Below, piece after piece: positions 4,002-57,730 of a stretch of 64,000 bases of DNA (position 1 is its first letter; every line of letters begins with the position of its first letter). The notes under the pieces are model-generated. The model made no database searches. It saw only the letters and a list, made by a program, of their open reading frames with translations, and was not told where the DNA came from. The position numbers were made by a program, and so were the translations under genes. Origin of the DNA: Epiperipatus broadwayi. Lineage: Eukaryota; Animalia; Onychophora. The DNA lies in contig JAQFVV010000006.1 of the NCBI GenBank assembly GCA_028023455.1, forward strand, positions 17,980,001 to 18,044,000. The letters are read 5' to 3'.

Positions 4002-4520
4002 GCTCAATTTATTTCAAAACATATTTATATAAATTCATTGAAAAGCAGTCAACAATACCAATGTCAATACAATCAATAATTTCAATCTGTTGTCAAAGCA
4101 ACAGATTGATATTGTTTAAGTGTTGACTGCTTTCAATGAATTTACATTTATAAATCTATCTAGCATTGAGCATTATTAGCTTTATTATTTTAGTAACATA
4201 TTGTTGGTATGCAGTTTATTATTCTGCTTTTAGAACAGGGTATATTTACCAGTTTAATGAAGTTTATTTAAACTTGTTTCTATCAGTAATTTCATTCTCT
4301 GGGGTCAAGTTGCAATTTTTAGTGACTATATAAACATATTAAACCATAAATAAAAGTGAAAAATTCCATTTAAGGATTTTCATCTTTATTGTTAAAAGGG
4401 GATTATCTTGACAATAAATTGAGAATGTTGATTGCATTAATATTATTTTTTAAGTATTGACTGCTTTCAATAAATTTACATTTATAAACCTATTTAGCCT
4501 TGAGCATTATTAGTTTTATT
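4002..4520. repeat. Fold-back (4002-4172) plus ~335-bp direct repeat of its right arm
   Basis: CAATCTGTTG..CAACAGATTG centre; TTGACTGCTTTCAAT..TTGAGCATTATTAG at ~4123 and ~4457. Confidence 0.7.
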
Positions 4521-4574
4521 TATATATATCTCAATTTAATAATAGACAATGAGGTAAGATGTAAATTACTTATT

Positions 4575-4735
4575 ATTATTATTATATAGAAGCTAAATCC
4601 ACAGTCAAGATGTATTGGACCTTCTTTTGATTAGTAGTAGCTTGGATAGGTTTACTATTGTTTTTATTCAATTTTAAGAACTGCTCTGGTTAGTTGCTGC
4701 ACATCAATATACCTTGGTTGTGGATTTAACTTCAT
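4575..4735. repeat. Short fold-back element (~30-bp imperfect inverted ends)
   Basis: GAAGCTAAATCCACAGTCAAGATGTATTG / CAATATACCTTGGTTGTGGATTTAACTTC. Confidence 0.55.
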
Positions 4736-4895
4736 ATATACACATAACAGTTATTCCATTTACTAATTAATTTGCATATATATATATATATGTAATAAAT
4801 AAAGTTTGATATCTGTATTCGTTTCACAATATATGTAATATACAAATCAATATATATATCAAAATACAGTACAATTTATATAAATTATAATCTTT

Positions 4896-4938
4896 TAGAA
4901 GTACTTTCGACTATATACTTTGTAGTCTTTATCAACTA
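4896..4938 (-). ncRNA. Mirror copy of the U3-A8 hammerhead
   Basis: Left arm of the palindrome, one substitution in the stem II loop. Confidence 0.62.
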
Positions 4939-5408
4939 TATAACGTTGAATAATCAAAACGAGACAATCCTTAACAATACCCATAGTTCAATTCAGATTT
5001 CCCACAATTCTGTTATCTTAACATTTGATGACTGGCGATTCATTAACATTTGACGATTTCTTGAAATCAACATAACCTCTTTTATTTTACGTTTATTATG
5101 ACAATGTTCAATTTGAATAATTTTCATATTTTTATAATCAAATTTAAATCCATATTGACAAGATTTATTTTGATCAAAATAAATCTTGTCAATATGGATT
5201 TAAATTTGATTATAAAAATATGAAAATTATTCAAATTGAACATTGTCATAATAAACGTAAAATAAAAGAGGCTATGTTGATTTCAAGAAATCGTCAAATG
5301 TTAATGAATCGCCAGTCATCAAATGTTAAGATAACAGAATTGTGGGAAATCTGAATTGAACTATGGGTATTGTTAAGGGTTGTCTTGTTTTGATTATTCA
5401 ACGTTATA

Positions 5409-5451
5409 TAGTTGATAAAGACTACAAAGTGTATAGTCGAAAGTACTTCTA
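5409..5451 (+). ncRNA. Minimal type I hammerhead, U3-A8 variant
   Basis: UAG-UUGAUAA-A-GACUA CAAAGUGUA UAGUC-GAAAG UA CUU^CUA; palindromic stem III AGUACU. Confidence 0.65.
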
Positions 5452-5639
5452 AAAGATTATAATTTATATAAATTGTACTGTATTTTGATATATATATATT
5501 GATTTGTATATTATATATATATATATACACACATAAACATTGAGTGGAAAGTGAGATGACTAATAAAATGAAGTTATTTACCCATAAAAACATTCAATGA
5601 TACAAACTGAAATCATTTATTATAATTAAAAATAAGATA

Positions 5640-5815
5640 ATATGTACATAGGGACATTTACTAATAAAAGATAATGTCTCTATACACAGGAATATTTAGT
5701 AATAGAAAATGAAGTTTCTTATATACAGGAACATCAAAAAATAGAAATGAGATGATGTACATTCAAAAACATTCAGTAATAAAAGACACTTACTAGGAAC
5801 ATTCAGTAATAGAAG
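5640..5815. repeat. Degenerate ~40-bp minisatellite
   Basis: Recurrent AGGAACATTCAGTAATA(G/A)AA units. Confidence 0.55.
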
Positions 5816-5834
5816 GAGAGTATACTTACATATA

Positions 5835-6060
5835 AGGTTTTTTAAATATAGGGATTTGAACTCAGACTATCAAGCAACCTTCAACTATCCACACTATCTA
5901 ATATTACTGATACACATGACTACACACTTATCTTTTTTACATGTGTGTTGTCATGAGTATCAGTAGTATGAGATAGGGTGGATAGTTGAAGGTTGCTTGA
6001 AAGTCTGAGTTCAAACCCCTATATTTACAATTAAGTTCCAGGTATAAGTATGCCTGTATT
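5835..6060. mobile_element. Family D-related fold-back (post-HHR segment only)
   Basis: TATAGGGATTTGAACTCAGACTATCAAGCAACCTTCAACTATCC ... GGATAGTTGAAGGTTGCTTGAAAGTCTGAGTTCAAACCCTATA. Confidence 0.7.
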
Positions 6061-7039
6061 TCAAATCTTATAAGGTGTTTTAATAATATATGTGGTCACT
6101 GACCTAAGAAACTTTTAATAATAGAAAATGAGGTAAGATGAGATTTTGGAATTATTTTTAAAAGATAAGAATATTAGAACTTTATTATAAATTTTGCAAA
6201 ACCAAAATTCATAAAAATATGATCCAATTATATCACTTGGAAAAATTATCAATTAAAACAAATCAATTTATATTTCTACACTAAAGTAAAAAAAATCTTA
6301 AAAAGATTTGAAATCTGTTATACCAATTCAATTTACAAACATCCTGCACATTTCCTGACTGGGGATTGGAAGATCCCAGGACCGATTCTAACATTCACAG
6401 TTTCTGTAGCTTGAACTTCTTATGAACACTTGAGCAATAAAGCCATATGCATTTTGTTTTTAATTTATAAGCATGACTTTAGCATGTTTGTATAAATAAA
6501 TGCATTGTATTCACAACTCTGCCAATGATTTTTCTTCACATGCAGGTATCATGTGTGGTTCAGAGTAGTAATAGAGAGATGCACTCTAAAAAGATAAATA
6601 TTCCTGCTACTCAGATATAAAAAAATCAGTTTAATCGAGTGCTGTGCTTGGGCTGTTATATTGATACTCATATGTCACATGACTGTCTGAACAATGGCAT
6701 TTGTCACATGCTCCCACAAAAAGTATAATAAAGGCAGAATGCCAATAGTCTGTTATTCAAAATTATCCAAAAATATTTCAAAGGTAACCACTAATCTTTT
6801 ATAATAAATAAATCAGTTTACATACATTTACAAATAAATTTTTAAAAAACCATTTAGTTAATACTTGTAAATTAATAAGTCTAATTATAATGAATTGCTT
6901 GTTTTTTCCCCCCATCTTAGCAGACTTAGAGTTCATAACAAAGGGTAAAAAATCTATTATTTAAAAAATCCACAAATTCCAAAAAGTCATGAAATCAAAG
7001 ACTTTGGATTAATGTTATTTTTAAATGTAAGCCAATAAA

Positions 7040-7829: not shown

Positions 7830-8390
7830 TTAAACCACTAAATATCATATAATCACCATTTTTATGCTTGTTCATAACTGTTATTAAAACAAGCAAAACT
7901 CTCCATACAGTAATACCACTCAATGCAAGCCAGAGTAATCAATGGATGCCAGAAGGCTTGTGCATAAAATCCCTATCTAGTGTCTACTCATCCAATATCC
8001 CCAGACTAGTTTCTGGCTTGTGACCTTCATCAGTGAGGAGCCTTGGATCTGAGAGCACAGCACCTAGTGCAACCCTCCAGAAGCCACCTTTTATCTCTAT
8101 TTAACTACAAAACTATGAGAATAAAATTGAAACACAATAATATTTTCAATCTAAGCTCATTAGCCTATATAATCATATAGGTCTGAACTCAATTCAATAC
8201 CCATTCATTTTGGTGTCTTTATTACTTTAATAAGCATAGTCATCACTATCCTATTAGGCAGGATTGGTATTAAACCACTAACATCACATGATCACCATTT
8301 CTTATGCTTGCTTGTAACTGTTCTGGTATCCATTGATTATTCTGGCTTGCACTGAGTGGCACTACTGTATGCAGAGTTTTGCCTGTTTTA
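7830..8390 (-). mobile_element. Family A element, full monomer plus inverted 3' segment
   Basis: Collinear with 48833-49290; CATCACATGATCACC-like motif recurs ~437 bp apart; 8322-8390 is an inverted copy of ~7880-7950. Confidence 0.85.
7990..8048 (-). ncRNA. Type I hammerhead ribozyme (family A), intact
   Basis: AUCCAAGGCUCCUCA-CUGAUGA-AGGU CACAA GCCA-GAAAC UA GUC^UGGGGAUAUUGGAU. Confidence 0.87.
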
Positions 8391-12289: not shown

Positions 12290-12650
12290 TTAAATAATCC
12301 ACATCCAGTGCCTTTCAACTCAATATTGCCAGACTAGTTTTTAGCTTATGGCTTTCATCAGTGAGCAGCCTTGAATTTGAGAGCAGTGCATCTAAATTTT
12401 TGGATCTAATGAAGCTCTCCAGCATCAACTTTAACTGTAAAGCTAACAGCCCAAATTGAAACACAATAATATTTTCAATCCAAGGTAATTTACTTTATAG
12501 CCATACAGATTGAATCCAGTTCAGTATCTATATATTTTGTTTTTTTAAAACTACATTTACCATTATACGTTGTCTAAGATTGTTATTAAACCTTAAAACA
12601 TCATATAATTGCCATTTCTTTATGCTTACAGACATTATTAAAACAGTACC
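12290..12650 (-). mobile_element. Family A fragment, diverged
   Basis: CCAGACTAGTTTTTAGCTTATGGCTTTCATCAGTGAGCAG and downstream ACACAATAATATTTTCAATC block. Confidence 0.7.
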
Positions 12651-14049: not shown

Positions 14050-14605
14050 CAGTCCAAGCCTTACTAATCAATGGATACAAGAAGATTGTGCATAAAATCT
14101 CTATATAGTGCCTATTCATCCAATATCCCCAGACTAGTTTCTAACTTGTGGCTTTCATCAGTGAGGAGTCTTGAGTCTGACATCTTAGGATGTAACACAA
14201 CCCTCCAGCAGTCATCTTTGATCTACTTAGTTAATTATAAAACTATAAGTTCAAGATGAAAAAATATTTTTAATCCAAACTCATTTGTTTGAACCAAGTT
14301 CAGTATCTGTACATTTTGATGCCTTTGGTTTTTTTAAAACAAGTCATCATCATTGTATGGGCAGGATTGGTATAATGATCAACATTTCCTGTGCTTACAC
14401 AAGCTGTTAAAACAGTAATAAACTCTCCCAGTGCTATTCAGTGCAAGTCTTAGCAACCAATTAATGCAAACAAGGCTTGTGCATAAAATCCTTATCTAAT
14501 GCCTATTCATTCAAAATTGCCAGACTAGTTTCTAGCTTGTGGCTTTCATCAGTTTGCTCCTGTTTTAACAGCTTATGTAAGCATAAAAAATGGTGATCAT
14601 GCGCT
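14050..14605 (-). mobile_element. Family A partial tandem (two HHR cores 391 bp apart)
   Basis: AGACTAGTTTCTA(A/G)CTTGTGGCTTTCATCAG at 14131 and 14522. Confidence 0.8.
14118..14176 (-). ncRNA. Type I hammerhead ribozyme (family A)
   Basis: CUCCUCA-CUGAUGA-AAGC CACAA GUUA-GAAAC UA GUC^UGGGGA; stem II AGC/GUU. Confidence 0.75.
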
Positions 14606-26633: not shown

Positions 26634-26691
26634 TGTCCTAGCTCCTCACTGAAGAGAGACATAGCACGAAACCAGTCTGGGGATGGGGATA
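26634..26691 (+). ncRNA. Type I hammerhead ribozyme related to family A, decayed stem II
   Basis: UGUCCUAGCUCCUCA-CUGAAGA-GAGACAUAGCAC-GAAAC CA GUC^UGGGGAUGGGGAUA; same stem I architecture as family A. Confidence 0.65.
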
Positions 26692-26904
26692 ATTCTAGTT
26701 AAAAATGATTTGAATGCTTACTCTTGTAGCATTTATCATAAAAATAATAAAAATACGCTTGTTTAAAGCTATTACTATGCTTGTTATATATATATAATAT
26801 TTCCAGGAGCTTCCACATAATAAAAATATAATAGCTAAATAGCTAATGTTTCAGTATAATAAATACTTTTCTCAAAGCTTCTTCTTTCTCAAATCATAAG
26901 AATG

Positions 26905-27450
26905 TATGTGGAGAGATTTAAAATCATTATTTTTTCTTTTCTTTTCTCCTCATTCCTGAATTCTATTGGTTTTGAAGATTTAAAACACATTTAATTCTCC
27001 AATAGCTTTTTCCAAATATTGTTAATTTTCTTTAATTTATACTTTTCATTTATGCTTGTAGACATTTTAAACATCTCTGTAGCTTCCCTTAGCAGTCTCT
27101 GGTCATATTGTTCAATTTTTGCCAGAATATGTGCTTTATTAAAATTGATTAGTTAATTTAATGTGTGAATAATTGGCTGATGAATTAGATTTTTTTCTAA
27201 TTGCCAAAATGTGTTCTTGCTTTCTTATGTTTATTCTATGATTGGTCTATCCAATGTATGAATGTAAACACATTTTATTTGGAATTTAATATACACCATG
27301 ACATTCCAAAGGAATTTTATCTTTAGGATGTGGAAATACTTCATTAATTTTTTTAAATATAAGTATAAATTGTGTGGATATTATTTTTCTTTAAAAGATG
27401 GCTAATTTCATCAGTTACTACCTTTATATTTGGCAGAACAGTCTTATGAT
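26905..27450 (-). mobile_element. Penelope-like element remnant, GIY-YIG endonuclease region (frameshifted, stops)
   Basis: Minus-strand translation KTVLPNIKVVTDEISHLLKKNNIHT...PHPKDKIPLECHGVY*IP...SYIG*TNHRINIRKQEHILAIRKK matches the PLE LPY...KDK...GVY...YIG.T motif order; ~26790-26905 is an inverted copy of ~27445-27560. Confidence 0.85.
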
Positions 27451-27799
27451 TTGAGAAAAAAGAAACTCTGAGACAAAGTACTTATGATTGAACTGAAACA
27501 TTAGCTATTTAGCTATTATATTTTTATTACACAGAAGCTCCCAGAAATAATACTATGATTTTATCCATGAGAAATATATATATATATATATATTGTACCC
27601 TTGCTTACTTGTTAACATTGAAAAAACTCTCTGGCTAAACTTAACTAAGTCACACTTCATTTTTAACATATAATATCTAATAAAATTATGATTTAAAATA
27701 ATTTATCTTATTTAAATAATAAAGTAAAAAAATAATAAAAAAACAACAAATTAAATACTAAGGTTCAAATTACATTCCCAGCTCTAGCTCATTATTTAC

Positions 27800-32100: not shown

Positions 32101-33489
32101 CTAATAGTAAAACATTTTTACATACACATTCACAGATAATATAAAATATATTCACATTTATAAAATTTCTTCATACATATTTAATTTACTTGTATAATAT
32201 CACTTTTGTTTTCCTTTTCATCCTTTTGAAGCACATATAACATATTAAATAGCTTTCAAAAATTATCCTCAACAGAATAATAAAATATAAATTTCTTGAC
32301 TGTTTAAATTTATGAGGATTTATCGTAATTGTTAAATATAAATATTCTTTTGCTTCATACATACTAATGATATTAAATATAAAGTTCTTACAAATCATTA
32401 GGATTTCCTCAGTTATTTGGTTGAAATTCTCATGGCTTCTTCTAAGCATTAGGCTGATGATTCAATGGCAACAATTGGTCTCCATAAACTTATCATGGTT
32501 TTGTTAAGCTTCAATGTAAAAATATTAATGACAGGGAATTAATTCATTTACTCAAACATTGAATACATTTAAATAATTATTTAAAACTATACTTTTAACT
32601 TTAATATAAAAAAAATATTTTATAAAAAAAACTTTTAAAATGAATTAAAGACAAGACCAGATTAGACAAACAAAACAAGACAAAATTAAACTAAACTAGA
32701 CTGTCTAGACTGATTGAACCTATATTTATATCTATCTTATCCAGTGATTTCATTAGTTGATCCAAATTTTTCTTAAATACTAATTTACATATAAATTAAA
32801 TTTTTGTTTACAAAATAATTTTCTAAAATAATATAATTATTTTTATATTATGTAAAATGTATTTAATATTCTATAATATAGAATTCCTTTATTTAAATAT
32901 TAAAATACTTTTATTAATTTGAATAATAATTTTAAAATATTATTTAGACAACACTATAAAGAATTAATAGTTACTTTTAAAGTAAAACTTTTCAATATTA
33001 CTTGCAACATTTTAATGTTTCAATTTTATCAACAAGGAACTAAAATTAATATGTCCGCTTAACACATGTAAGCTCAAAGACAAATACACACTTTAAAGAC
33101 ATGACACTTTTTAAATCATTCTAAAATAATTTAATTAATAATTATTTAAAATAACTTAAATAAACAAAATTATTTAAAATAGAAATATTATATAATATTA
33201 AATATTGTAATTTAATTATTGTTTTAACATTATATCCTTTAAACATAATAAACATTAATTAATTTTATCTTTCAAAAAATATATAATATATTACTTTTAT
33301 CATTAAAATTATATTAAAACAACTTTTAAAATACTTTAAATATCTTTATAAACTTTCTATCTAACAATTTTAAAACCTATTTTATTTACAAAATTAATAT
33401 AAAATAGTATGGACTAATATAAATTTTAAATTTTTTTAAAACTAGCTATTTTTAAATGATTGTGGCAAATAACATGGTCAATATATATA

Positions 33490-34015
33490 TATATGTAAAC
33501 TTATAAATAAATATTAGAAAATATAGTAATTAAAATTTGTTAAAAAGAACAAAAAATATAAACTTCACTTAGAACTGCTTTCAACTATCCTTGTAGTCTT
33601 TGTCAACTAATATTTTGAAAGGTCAACTTTCCCATAATTTCATGATCTTAATGTTTGCTGCCTGTCTATTGATTAAGTCTTGCTTGTATTTATACATTAA
33701 CATAGCTTTCTTGATTTTTCTTTTATTATTGTTTCTTTCAGTTTGCAATATTTTTACATTAAATGAAAAAAATAATAATAATAAAAGAAAAATCAAGGAA
33801 GCTATGTTAATATATAAATACAAGCAAGACTTAATCAATAGGCAGGCAACAACTATTAAGATCATGGAATTATGAGAAAGTTGACCTTTCAAAATATTAG
33901 TTGACAAAGACTACAGGGATAGTTGAAAGCGCTCCTAAGTGACGTTTATACTTTTTATTCTTTTTAACAAATTTTAATTACTGTATTTTTTAATATTTAT
34001 TTATATGTTTAAATA
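33490..34015. mobile_element. Penelope-like 3' end as fold-back (~250-bp arms, ~20-bp loop)
   Basis: Right arm reads NNNKRKIKEAMLIYKYKQDLINRQATTIKIMEL (GIY-YIG C-terminus); ORFs 33600..33875(+) and 33623..33907(-) are mirror images. Confidence 0.85.
33897..33938 (+). ncRNA. Minimal type I hammerhead, U3-A8 variant
   Basis: UUAG-UUGACAA-A-GACUA CAGGGA UAGUU-GAAAG CG CUC^CUAA; palindromic stem III AGCGCU; decayed mirror copy at 33569-33610 (-). Confidence 0.68.
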
Positions 34016-34079
34016 TATTATTTTGAAGAAATAAAGACATCAATTTGTAGTATTATTATATATAAACATTAAAAGCATA

Positions 34080-34790: not shown

Positions 34791-34828
34791 AGAAAGTTAC
34801 TGTTAACACTAACTGAAATAATTATAGA

Positions 34829-34977
34829 AAATATACAAACCATTATACAATTACAAATATCCAGTAACGCCCTCTGTTTAAAGATCTATATCTCAATAAT
34901 AGCTATTATTGAGATATAGATCTTTAAACAGAGGGCGTTACTGGATATTTGTAATTGTATACTTGTTTGTATATTTT
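34829..34977. repeat. Near-perfect spacerless palindrome (centre 34902/34903)
   Basis: TATACAATTACAAATATCCAGTAACGCCCTCTGTTTAAAGATCTATATCTCAATAATAG|CTATTATTGAG... exact mirror over ~60 bp. Confidence 0.95.
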
Positions 34978-34999
34978 ATATATATATATAAAGGGAGTC

Positions 35000-38869: not shown

Positions 38870-40280
38870 TAGAATAGATTAATACTCTTATTCTTCTTTA
38901 CTTTCTTTGCATTTCTTCATATATTCATATATATTGCTTATAATAACTTCTCTCATATACACTTTAATGCAAAACAATTTTTAATAAAACTTCTTTATTT
39001 TCCTGACAGTTTAAAAGGTAAAGGAAACTTGAGTTCTGATGAAGACTGCTGGACAGTTGAAACTGTCAGAAAAATAAAGAAGTTTTATTAAAAAAATTTG
39101 TTTGCATTAAAGTGTATATGAGAGGAGTTTTTATAAGCAATATATAGAATAGATTAAATATGGAAATTCATAATAAATGTAGAGGTTTGAAGACAGAAGT
39201 TCAATGATTGACAAAAAAATTAAAAATGATTAGTATATTAAACTGCAAAGAATATGCAAACATTTCTAATCATGCTCATTCTAGATCTTTATTTGATTAA
39301 AAGCAACATATGGACCTGAAAAACATCATAATATAATTAAATTCAACAATGACCCTTTTATATGATGATAGTGAGATGGAAGGAGTATTTGATCATATTT
39401 TGAATAATGATACAAAAATTGAGATGACAACATTAAGGTTATATATACATTTTATCTACTTATTTATATTTATTCAAAGATATTTGGCTTAGTGAAATCA
39501 AAACAGCTCTTTGTATTGGAAAGGCTGCAGATCCTGATAAAATATCTTGAGAGTTTTAAAATATGGTGGTGATATATTAGATGTGAATATATTGGAAATT
39601 TTAGGAATATGCTACACAATTGTAAATTTAGATGTGTTTGTTGTTCCAAATTGAAATAAATAAGAATAGTTATTGTGTAATATTATTATTTACTTCTTGT
39701 TTTCCTATGTATTGATTTCTACTTTAACATATACCATTTACAACCTTCATAAACACTTTATCAATACTTTTATTTATATCAAACTAACAGTTTTGACTGT
39801 CCTGCAGTCATCATCAGAGCTACAATATATAATATAAATAAATGATAATAATATTTATTAAATAATAGAATAAATGTTAAAGTTTATAATTATTATAATA
39901 AATAATATTTTTAAAAAATAAAGTGATATAAAATAAATTGATGTAAAATAAATATTGATAGAATTATTTTAAGAATAAAGTAATGGGAAATGATTATTTA
40001 TAATGGTCAGATTAAGATGTATATTTATTTTTGTTTATATTGTGTATTTAATTATGCATATGAATATGTGTATAAGTGTATTAATTATATAATTATATAT
40101 TTGAATATTGTAGCTCTGATGATGACTGAAGGACAGTCGAAACTGTAAGGAAAATAAAGAAGTTTTTAAGACAATTTGTTGCATTAAAGTGTATTTGAAA
40201 GAAGTGTTATAAGCAATATATATGATTACATGAAGATATGCGAAGAAAGTGAAAGAGAAGAATAAGAGAATATACTTCTG
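38870..40280. mobile_element. Family B PLE-like terminal repeats in nested inverted arrangement, with minimal HHR-like motifs at 39031-39070(+), 39781-39822(-), 40111-40150(+)
   Basis: CTGATGA-N-GACTG CAGGA CAGTC-GAAAC T GTC; ~38870-39012 inverted against ~39060-39200 and 40140-40280. Confidence 0.65.
39470..39600 (+). mobile_element. LINE fragment upstream of RT
   Basis: IWLSEIKTALCIGKAADPDKIS*EF*KYGG resembles EI..A+..GKA.GPD.I..E..K.GG. Confidence 0.55.
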
Positions 40281-41880: not shown

Positions 41881-41975
41881 TCTCGCATTGGTGGTCGAGA
41901 GGTCATCGCGCCTGCCTTGCACTTGCAGGCAGTTGACCGGGTTGCGGGTTCGTGTCCCGGCCGATGCTATGACAC
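41881..41975 (+). mobile_element. tRNA-derived SINE, young copy
   Basis: A-box-like TGGTGGTCGAGAGG, B-box-like GGGTTCGTGTCCC, CpGs retained, A-rich tail. Confidence 0.65.
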
Positions 41976-48933: not shown

Positions 48934-48992
48934 ATCCAATATCCCCAGACAAGTTTCTGGCTTGTGGCCATCATCAGTGATGAGCTTTGGAT
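48934..48992 (-). ncRNA. Type I hammerhead ribozyme (family A), second copy of tandem
   Basis: Same fold; core CUGAUGA/GAAA/GUC intact, stem III loop UU instead of UA, one stem I mismatch; predicted cleavage between 48948 and 48947. Confidence 0.85.
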
Positions 48993-49388: not shown

Positions 49389-49447
49389 ATCCAATATCCC
49401 CAGACTAGTTTCTGGCTTGTGGCCATCATCAGTGAGGAGCTTTGGAT
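49389..49447 (-). ncRNA. Type I hammerhead ribozyme (family A), intact
   Basis: Minus strand AUCCAAAGCUCCUCA-CUGAUGA-UGGC CACAA GCCA-GAAA-C UA GUC^UGGGGAUAUUGGAU: full core, stem II, palindromic stem III (ACUAGU), stem I of 6 bp + internal loop + 6 bp; predicted cleavage between 49403 and 49402. Confidence 0.9.
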
Positions 49448-55655: not shown

Positions 55656-56859
55656 GGAATTGAGTATACAATATTAAAAAAACGACATATAAATGTTATT
55701 AGAACTCTTTATTTTTATGTGAATATTTTTCAAACCTAAAAAATGTCTTATTCCTATTAGTTAAATGGTTTTCATTCTATTATCAAACTGAACTCTTGGT
55801 CCTACAATTACCCTCGAGGCGATCGGGCACGCAGCTTCCTAACTGCTCAGTAATCTCACTTTCTAAATTTACAGTATGAAAGAAATAAGTGCAATGTATT
55901 ATGCCTGATAAAACTGATTAAATTGATCACAATAGAAGAGACAATTGTAAGATTCAGCTGTTGATGCAGTGATTAATGGTAATAGTATGCATATTTAAAA
56001 TAATCATGTCATTACAGCGTTTATACGAACGTGTAATGCATTCGATTAATGAGTAATCACATCTCTTCTCTTAATGGGCCAAAGAAGTTAGATTGAGAAA
56101 GGTAATTTGTTTGAAGAAAAATCTAAATTCTTTTTTTTTTTAATTCAGAACATGAAAAAATTTAATTCAACTTTTTTTAAAATAAAATTTGTGTACTTAT
56201 AAAAGAGAAGTAAACATTTTAATATAGTAAAACAGTACTTCAAATTTATCAGCATCCTCTTTTATAAATACTGTCATAATAGACATTTTTTAAATACATG
56301 AATCTTATCTTAATATGACATTCACTATCGAAAAAAAATAAAATAGTAATAATAATCAGAGGCCATCCAGATTCTTAAAAAGTCCAGACTGTTTCAATAA
56401 ATGTTATACATCTCTAAATTACGTCACATTGAAGGGGGGGGGTGTATAAAATCTTAATTAAAACTGTTAATTTTATATCAAATAATCCATCACTTTCCCT
56501 CTTCACAGTTTAAAATATTTTTAATTTCGTTTTTATTGTAAGAGCTTTTAATTATTTCTACATAAAATTGCTCTCAGCATTTCTATAACAGTTTTTAAAA
56601 TAACATTGCTTACTATACCAGGCACTATGTTCCCCTACTGACAACGTATGCTCATACAAGATGGTTACATCTTGCATATAATGAAGTTATTTTTGGATTA
56701 ACATGAAAGTTGTCACTTTAATGAATACAGATCAAACGTTAAATTTAATTAATTAATTAGAATTAATACTGATGATAATGATCATACCCTATATCATTTA
56801 TATAATTTATTTACCCAAATCACACTTTTCTTTATTTTGCTGTAGCATTCTATATAAAT

Positions 56860-57660
56860 ACAATTTATCCAAACTGCTTCGAACACTTTTTTAGCAAAAC
56901 TCTTTATTGGTACATATATACATACACATACGTTTCGACTGTCCTGCAATCTTCTTCAGAGCCAATTTATTTTAATCTCTTAATAACTGAAACACACAAG
57001 CTTATTATATGCCTGTGTCTATATATGTAATATATAGGATATATGAGCACAGACTTTCACATGAGCCACCACTCTCCACACCATCTCATAACCCTGATAC
57101 CCTTGAACACATATATGTTGAAAAGATAAATAATCTCCAATATACATTTTAGGTCAACATGGGTGTGACAAGAATCTCAGCCTCAGGGTGGCTTTTGAGC
57201 ATTCCATCATCAGATTTTCAATTGGATGGTTGAAGAGTTGGAGTGTGGAGTAGATTGAAGGTTTGGCTATCTTAATATATATCTGAGCACTTATAGCATA
57301 TATGTGTAGAGTAGTAATCTGGACCAAGTGATGATTGCTGGTTTAGCATGAAATATTTATACTGGTGATTATTTATATTTTCAACATATATGTGTTCAAG
57401 TGTATCAGGGTTATGAGATGGTGTGGAGAGTGGTGGGTCATGTGAAGATCTGTGCTCATATACCCTATTTAATCTCTTAAAAAACGTCCTGCAGTCTTCT
57501 TCAGAGCCAATTTACTTTATTCTCATAAACAAACATTTTTTTAAGAGACTAAAGTAAATTGGCTCTGAAGAAGATTGCAGGATAGTCAAAACGTAGGTGT
57601 ATGTATATATGTATAAATAAAGAGTTTTGCTAAAAAAGTGTTCAAAGTGGTTTGAATAAA
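56860..57660. mobile_element. Family C PLE-like inverted repeats with HHR-like motifs at 56925-56964(-) and 57561-57600(+), enclosing a family D fold-back
   Basis: GGCT-CTGAAGA-A-GATTG CAGGA CAGTC-GAAACGTA; 56865-56985 inverted against 57540-57660. Confidence 0.6.
57030..57470. mobile_element. Family D fold-back with degenerate HHR at 57317-57370 (+)
   Basis: ~57035-57145 inverted against ~57355-57470; ATCTGGACCAA-GTGATGA-TTGCTGGTTTAGCAT-GAAAT. Confidence 0.7.
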
Positions 57661-57730
57661 TGGTAGTTATAACTGCTTTATATAATATATATATATATGA
57701 TTATAACTGCTTTATATAATATATATATAT

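Follow-up and report, generated by a model that had tools for sequence, protein, structure and literature searches.

The 64-kb stretch of DNA analyzed here (the window) contains, at positions 4829-5518, a 690-bp spacerless palindrome consisting of two head-to-head tails of a very abundant Penelope-like element (PLE; Table 1). Its two arms are 345 nt each and are separated by 0 nt; they are 96% complementary when compared without gaps in an inverted-repeat search and 98% identical over 345 nt in a gapped blastn alignment. A base-by-base check resolves the differences between them into four substitutions (4916/5431, 4961/5386, 4968/5379, and 5075/5272) and one TA indel. The block of mismatches at 4835-4849 is a 2-nt register shift caused by an additional TA within an internal (AT)n run. 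None of the four substitutions lies in the core or stems of the hammerhead motif described below, and one lies in its loop 2. Among the 17 inverted repeats found in the window (at least 60 nt, arms within 1.5 kb), this palindrome is the largest and the best. An initial annotation had placed a mirror symmetry with few mismatches about 5173/5174 and interpreted it as the 3' end of a PLE doubled head to head. Both statements agree with the arms defined here. The same annotation called the insertion young; the divergence of approximately 1.2% between the arms suggests an insertion that is fairly recent but not brand new.

Table 1. Features of the palindrome, its flanks, and related elements in the window
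Feature	Position	Strand	Evidence
(AT)8 microsatellite, presumed left part of the target	4776-4791		Published (TA)n preference (PMC8557442)
37-nt candidate one-sided tail, between the microsatellite and the left arm	4792-4828		Position
Left arm: 5'-truncated PLE 3' end, 3' end pointing left	4829-5173	-	Inverted repeat; 98% gapped identity to right arm; summed contig depth of 2e5-7e5
Mirror hammerhead motif, differing only at one loop-2 base (4916)	4896-4938	-	Gapped blastn; descriptor scan; covariance model
Mirror 59-codon remnant and stop, V for A at one codon	4993-5172	-	Translation
Fold-back junction, 10-nt self-complementary TTTGATCAAA of the source element itself	5169-5178		Contigs of four runs
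Right arm: same 5'-truncated PLE 3' end, 3' end pointing right	5174-5518	+	Inverted repeat; gapped blastn; contig depth
Open 59-codon remnant and stop, presumed C-terminal part of GIY-YIG endonuclease	5175-5354	+	Translation; Atlas clusters; weak match to remnant
Minimal type I hammerhead motif, U3-A8 core	5409-5451	+	Direct reading; descriptor scan; covariance model; family variant table
(TA)8 microsatellite at the outer end of the right arm, presumed right side of the target	5512-5527		Direct reading
Second, older fold-back of a related PLE with the same U3-A8 motif	33489-34018		Motifs 33898-33938 (+) and 33609-33569 (-); blastn
Canonical type I core family	1638, 8010-8033, 12313-12361, 14138-14161, 14529-14552, 36342, 48954-48977, 49409-49432		

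Each arm begins at the center of the palindrome with an open frame that runs uninterrupted to a stop codon, as initially annotated, although it comprises 59 codons and not 60. We presume that this frame is the GIY-YIG C terminus of a PLE. GIY-YIG was the only Pfam family among the named Atlas clusters nearest to it, and the frame aligns weakly but colinearly with a broken remnant at 26994-27152 on the minus strand. The corresponding frame of a second PLE family in the window (described below) is 27% identical to that remnant, with which it shares the pattern I(I/L)...R..(K/R)EA...N...KI..W, and the broken frames upstream of the remnant read GVY..YIG..R..EH. A Pfam scan of the broken pieces between 26994 and 27390 gave no match to GIY-YIG. 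The 59-residue frame had no match in Pfam, PHROGs, or the PDB using phmmer or a four-sequence profile, and a word-index search of 5.8 billion proteins returned nothing. Two lysine/asparagine-rich proteins were recovered by phmmer among 1.84 billion representatives; BLASTP aligns neither of them, they lack a relevant domain, and we rejected both. An AlphaFold2 model of the fragment is a single long helix and is uninformative, and the peptide of the second family gave one sub-threshold, unrelated Pfam match only.

Behind the coding frame, approximately 55 nt after the stop codon, each arm carries a complete motif of the form UAG-UUGAUAA-A-(5-bp stem II)-GAAAG-UA-CUU^CUA. In the plus-strand copy, the 5' strand of helix I (UAG, 5409-5411) is followed by UUGAUAA (5412-5418), an extra A (5419), a 5-bp stem II (GACUA/UAGUC, 5420-5424/5434-5438) enclosing a 9-nt loop, and GAAA (5439-5442). 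The 3' part comprises the self-complementary hexamer AGUACU, U17, and the CUA that closes helix I. Predicted cut sites lie at 5448/5449 for this motif and at 4899/4898, on the minus strand, for its mirror. The initial annotation had positioned UUGAUAA, the extra A, and the mirror copy (4938-4896) in the same way. Eleven of 13 core positions are canonical; the two exceptions, U at position 3 and A at position 8, are found in all four copies of the motif in the window (the strict core has C3...G8). Helix I spans 3-4 bp, and the pair closing the 5-bp stem II is G-C in the first family and G-U in the second. In three of the four copies the helix III hexamer (AGUACU or AGCGCU) is self-complementary, and the UA versus CG change between the two families, which preserves self-complementarity, is the sole covariation seen. 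No compensatory changes occur in stems I or II among these four copies.

The loose pattern UUGANAA...GAAA occurs 48 times in the window, which has 27% G+C, and is therefore meaningless by itself. We used a strict descriptor in which helix I has at least 3 bp, core positions 3 and 8 form a Watson-Crick pair, one extra base is allowed, stem II starts with G and has at least 4 bp, GAAA follows, positions 15.1 to 16.1 are self-complementary, and position 17 is not G. With the U3-A8 core, this descriptor has three matches in the window, whereas 200 random windows generated with a first-order Markov model averaged 0.005, which places the motif beyond chance. The three matches are the two arms of the palindrome and one arm of the second fold-back (33489-34018). 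A covariance model built from the four U3-A8 copies in the window scores the plus-strand motif (5409-5451) at 73.7 bits and finds no further U3-A8 copies in the window; motifs with a canonical core at 39032 and 40110 reach E values of only approximately 1-9 with this model.

No Rfam hammerhead family reached its gathering score anywhere in the window, nor E ≤ 10 over 4700-5650. The Rfam matches that do fall in the palindrome are spurious microRNA-precursor calls produced by the hairpin. All of the canonical C3-G8 motifs in the window were likewise missed at the gathering threshold, so the blindness stems from the minimal architecture and not from the core change alone. The expectation of the initial annotation that motif searches would overlook this element thus holds, and extends to Rfam even at E ≤ 10. 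For annotation, the consequence is that a whole high-copy class of hammerhead motifs in this genome escapes standard ribozyme models.

The abundance of the element is apparent from Logan contigs of a DNA run aligned to 4300-6100. Summed contig word depth, which is not equivalent to copy number, is 2e5-8e5 over 4788-5519, compared with approximately 30-125 in the adjoining unique flank (5520-5824). These values point to thousands of copies of the PLE family that share 90% likeness or more. Across the contigs of this family, no variant at a frequency of at least 10% is listed within the core (5412-5418); variation of 19-47% is present at 5429, in loop 2, and at 5403, upstream of the motif. The invariance of the core indicates that U3 and A8 are the fixed state of the family and not the decay of a single copy. 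We therefore reject chance or decay as the source of the U3 and A8 pair, which is fixed in thousands of copies and shared with a family approximately 70% alike. The motif first described from this locus, hammerhead-like with U3/A8 and with an additional base following A9, is real. In RNA-labeled runs, the family sequence is present and the unique flanks of the palindrome are absent; with thousands of copies in the genome, this result says nothing either way about transcription of the locus.

A second fold-back, at 33489-34018, has 250-nt arms with 91% complementarity; its axis of symmetry lies at 33753/33754, and the central 30 nt no longer pair. In a blastn comparison of the palindrome arm with the window, it is approximately 70% identical in DNA. 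Its coding remnant shares 50-57% protein identity with the first and is cut approximately 14 codons later in the frame. This later cut, together with the divergence, identifies the second fold-back as an independent event of a related family. The stretch between the stop codon and the motif cannot be aligned among the four 3' regions, its length differs by tens of bases, and the motif lies nearer to the stop codon in the second family. What the 3' UTRs of both families conserve is the island UAG-UUGA(U/C)AA-A-GACUA...UAGU(C/U)-GAAAG. The U3/A8 state is thus common to two families approximately 70% alike in DNA. One arm of the second fold-back has a decayed helix III hexamer, AGCAGU in place of AGCGCU, and the left end of this fold-back abuts a (TA)n run.

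The junction of the palindrome is resolved to the single base. In each of four runs, contigs begin to match the window at exactly 5169 and continue rightwards. In three of these runs (X1, X5, and X7), the letters directly before 5169 are unlike those of the window and continue the reading frame; in run X6, a 1001-nt contig also starts its match at 5169. These in-frame continuations indicate that longer copies exist and that the source element holds TTTGA directly ahead of TCAAA. The center of the palindrome at 5169-5178 therefore coincides with a 10-nt self-complementary site that occurs naturally in the source element. An accidental 5-nt extension of the match at the junction is unlikely (well under 1%). 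A fold-back center that is readable to the base and falls on a 10-nt self-complementary site of the element is the new detail provided by this locus, and it supplies a testable rule for the making of inverted copies by PLEs.

At the other extreme, the outer ends of both arms stop at the same position of the element and run into (TA)n, with (AT)8 and 37 nt present on the left. A search for a target-site duplication at the flanks found the TA repeat only. The locus thereby matches the insertion signature of PLEs: heavy 5' truncation, an inverted adjacent copy, a (TA)n target, and, judged by its position only, a candidate one-sided tail. The words TTTGATAT and CTGTATT are shared between 4792-4828 and the 3' end of the element in swapped order, which may be due to chance.

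We consider it likely that the palindrome records a single retrotransposition event of this abundant PLE, and we infer the order of the steps from the anatomy of the locus and from published biochemistry. In such an event, the endonuclease of the element would nick both strands of a (TA)n microsatellite, and the reverse transcriptase would prime on both 3' ends, starting in both cases from one initiation site close to the 3' end of the element RNA. Each cDNA would extend for approximately 345 nt, and the inverted copies would then be joined at the 10-nt self-complementary template site TTTGATCAAA. Joining could proceed through annealing of the two opposing cDNAs at this site or, as is equally expected, through one cDNA that snaps back at it and copies itself. 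A fixed initiation site on the RNA would yield identical outer arm ends and a one-sided tail, and the expected outcome would be two 5'-truncated element ends joined without a spacer, possibly flanked on one side by the 37-nt tail, and lacking a readable target duplication. Two independent primings would usually give unequal arms; the exact symmetry observed needs either palindromic microhomology or snap-back. In human LINE-1 twin priming, opposite-strand primings lead to inverted 5'-truncated segments joined at microhomology. That process inverts adjacent parts of one element and does not give two copies of the same 3' end, and it belongs to another enzyme class.

The exact symmetry, the zero spacer, and a center on a short natural palindrome would also fit fold-back repair, in which a single 5'-truncated insertion was later doubled at the DNA level by a template switch, or by repair of a hairpin-capped break, at TTTGATCAAA. 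The palindrome would then be a product of host repair. We regard this origin as improbable. Doubling at the DNA level would also copy flanking host DNA unless the break fell exactly at the 5' end of the element, and the head-to-head layout recurs in the window with other hammerhead elements (33489-34018, 39784-40149, 56853-57671, and 26795-27552). This layout is, moreover, a published property of PLEs (PMC8557442), and a PLE protein extends both strands in vitro (PMC11167929). We attach still less weight to the idea that the palindrome is an assembly artifact, arising for example from a chimeric fold-back read collapsed into the consensus. None of the short-read contigs joins the palindrome to its unique flanks, and complex Penelope insertions are known to trouble assemblies (PMC8557442), but four substitutions and one TA indel between the arms are not expected from a single-molecule fold-back read after polishing. 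The 64-kb window around the palindrome is also contiguous, with unique sequence that differs between the two sides, and an older, independent fold-back of the same kind is present 28 kb away.

Read as the footprint of one PLE insertion, the palindrome is a clean example of a known phenomenon, not a discovery: its layout and the U3-A8 core are already published, and every feature of the locus has a counterpart in published descriptions of PLEs. Long perfect palindromes in this genome are ordinary retroelement footprints and nothing exotic. Minimal hammerheads were defined in the terminal repeats of PLEs by Cervera and De la Peña in 2014 (PMC4209133). In that study, those of Schistosoma mansoni PLEs showed U3-A8 core covariation, for which a dedicated descriptor returned approximately 1,300 matches. 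PLE minimal hammerheads were described there as having a short helix I, an unpaired base where stem II begins on its 5' side (between 9 and 10.1), a conserved G10.1-C11.1 pair, and a palindromic 15.2-16.2 and loop 3, which implies action as a dimer; dual motifs were found on opposite strands, approximately 100-700 bp apart (PMC4209133). The novelty implied by the initial annotation for the U3-A8 covariation, the base after A9, and the opposite-strand pairs is thus anticipated by the 2014 report on S. mansoni PLEs.

The motifs in the window resemble those of S. mansoni Cercyon (PMC4209133) closely. Both are of type I, with a short helix I, G10.1-C11.1, an unpaired base after A9, the U3-A8 core, and a self-complementary 15.1-16.1; both lie in a repeat behind the coding frame and exist in high copy number, with the motifs mostly solitary or in opposite-strand pairs 100-700 bp apart. 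They differ in genome and element family and in the length of stem II, which is 5 bp here and 7-8 bp in the main S. mansoni families. A further distinction is that the opposite-strand motifs described here sit in a spacerless palindrome whose junction is readable to the base.

The architecture of the insertion is equally familiar. Craig et al. (2021) reported that PLEs are heavily 5' truncated, form inverted copies, prefer (TA)n targets, and carry a 30-40-bp tail on one side (PMC8557442); their complex insertion structure had appeared earlier in Evgen'ev and Arkhipova (2005) and Arkhipova (2006), as cited in PMC8557442. A tail of 30-40 bp at one end is a published signature of PLEs (PMC8557442, PMC11167929). 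The present locus shares with the PLEs of Craig et al. an inverted 5'-truncated copy abutting head to head, the (TA)n sequence, the lack of a readable target duplication, and an extension of 30-40 bp at one end only, represented here by the candidate 37-nt tail on the strength of its position. A typical unit in that study has a full or partial tandem copy beside the inverted one, whereas two equal short tails are present here. In a 2024 in vitro study, the protein of an Anolis PLE nicked and extended both strands of AT-rich DNA and began reverse transcription at a defined site within the RNA, from which the tail originates (PMC11167929). Such two-strand nicking and extension with fixed initiation fits the matching outer ends of the two arms, as well as the candidate tail, at this locus. 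That element, Anolis Poseidon, differs in being a vertebrate PLE with a canonical C3-G8 motif overlapping the start codon, and the joining of opposing cDNAs was not reconstituted in that study (PMC11167929).

A read-through transcript of the palindrome is predicted to form a single hairpin of approximately 345 bp with 99% of bases paired (minimum free energy, -514 kcal/mol). Each transcript direction holds only one sense hammerhead, making a dimer in cis impossible. Sequestration of the ribozymes in double-stranded RNA would follow from this geometry. The hammerhead motif in the palindrome is a passenger.

Self-cleavage by the U3-A8 core is doubtful. In the 2014 study of PLE motifs, a single motif showed no detectable cleavage in vitro, and dimeric or trimeric constructs had low activity (PMC4209133). 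One explanation, to which we give a somewhat less than even chance, is that the conserved 45-nt island is a dead or nearly dead ribozyme, kept for another role, such as a recognition site or a site of reverse transcription initiation, or through hitch-hiking. In comprehensive pairwise mutagenesis of a type III hammerhead, activity returned only with the C3G/G8C swap and was low for all other core double mutants (PMC9901934), and minimal Penelope hammerheads cleave poorly even as dimers (PMC4209133). Mutation of the hammerhead had no effect on insertion in vitro, where no RNA ends were found at the cut site (PMC11167929). Moreover, the minimum free energy fold of a single copy calculated with ViennaRNA is a competing hairpin, UAGUU/GACUA. 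Several properties of the island speak against its death. The only two non-canonical positions among the 13 of the core are exactly the pair in Watson-Crick contact, the helix III hexamer has stayed self-complementary through the UA-to-CG change between families, and the hammerhead is the best-conserved part of the 3' UTR between these families. A cofolded dimer of the motif is predicted by ViennaRNA to be more stable than two monomers. The PLE family offers a convenient natural substrate for testing cleavage by a U3-A8 core.

A more far-reaching proposal is that the U3-A8 motif is active as a dimer and that spacerless fold-backs arise specifically at self-complementary template sites and feed small-RNA silencing. 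We view this combination as rather unlikely. The ribose of G8 is thought to take part in acid catalysis by the hammerhead. If the proposal were true, the motif would represent a natural ribozyme with adenine in place of G8, its tertiary 3-8 pair kept by covariation, and the fold-backs would be sources of hairpin RNA for small-RNA silencing of the PLE family.

Other hammerhead-bearing elements are scattered through the window, and several of its 17 inverted repeats carry outward-facing motifs. Canonical C3-G8 minimal hammerheads of the form CUGAUGA-N-GACUG..CAGUY-GAAAC occur at 39784-39828/40105-40149 and at 39032-39086, and their stem II closely resembles the one in the U3-A8 family. The former are an outward-facing inverted pair approximately 280 nt apart, the left copy of which has G12 changed to A, and a canonical copy lies in a short fold-back at 38978-39094. 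The inverted repeat 56853-56986/57538-57671 also contains hammerhead motifs, which face outward like those of the palindrome. Approximately eight canonical type I cores belong to one family, CUGAUGA-N-GGCC/GUCACAAGCC-A-GAAA; some are arranged in direct pairs approximately 390 and 455 nt apart, as in retrozyme-like tandem repeats, and none of the eight or so reached the Rfam gathering score. The broken remnant compared above with the 59-codon frame is part of a third PLE remnant on the minus strand (26795-27552), which is flanked by 66-nt inverted repeats; its broken frames comprise the GVY..YIG..R..EH stretch and a C-terminal ..IL..R..REA.. stretch. A CUGAAGA...GAAA motif lies near this remnant, at 26649-26671.

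Two further fold-backs lie in the window. The one at 5840-6030, 320 bp to the right of the palindrome, has 88-nt arms and a 15-nt spacer; its arms end in a GAGTTCAAACCCC-like block resembling a tRNA T arm, and the repeat is even more abundant than the PLE (summed contig depth, 6e5-1.7e6). The other, at 34818-34987, is a spacerless palindrome with 85-nt arms that are 94% complementary; its sequence is unrelated to the Penelope tail, and its right end runs into a TA repeat. ARAGORN predicts a single tRNA-Cys(GCA) gene at 41885-41968.
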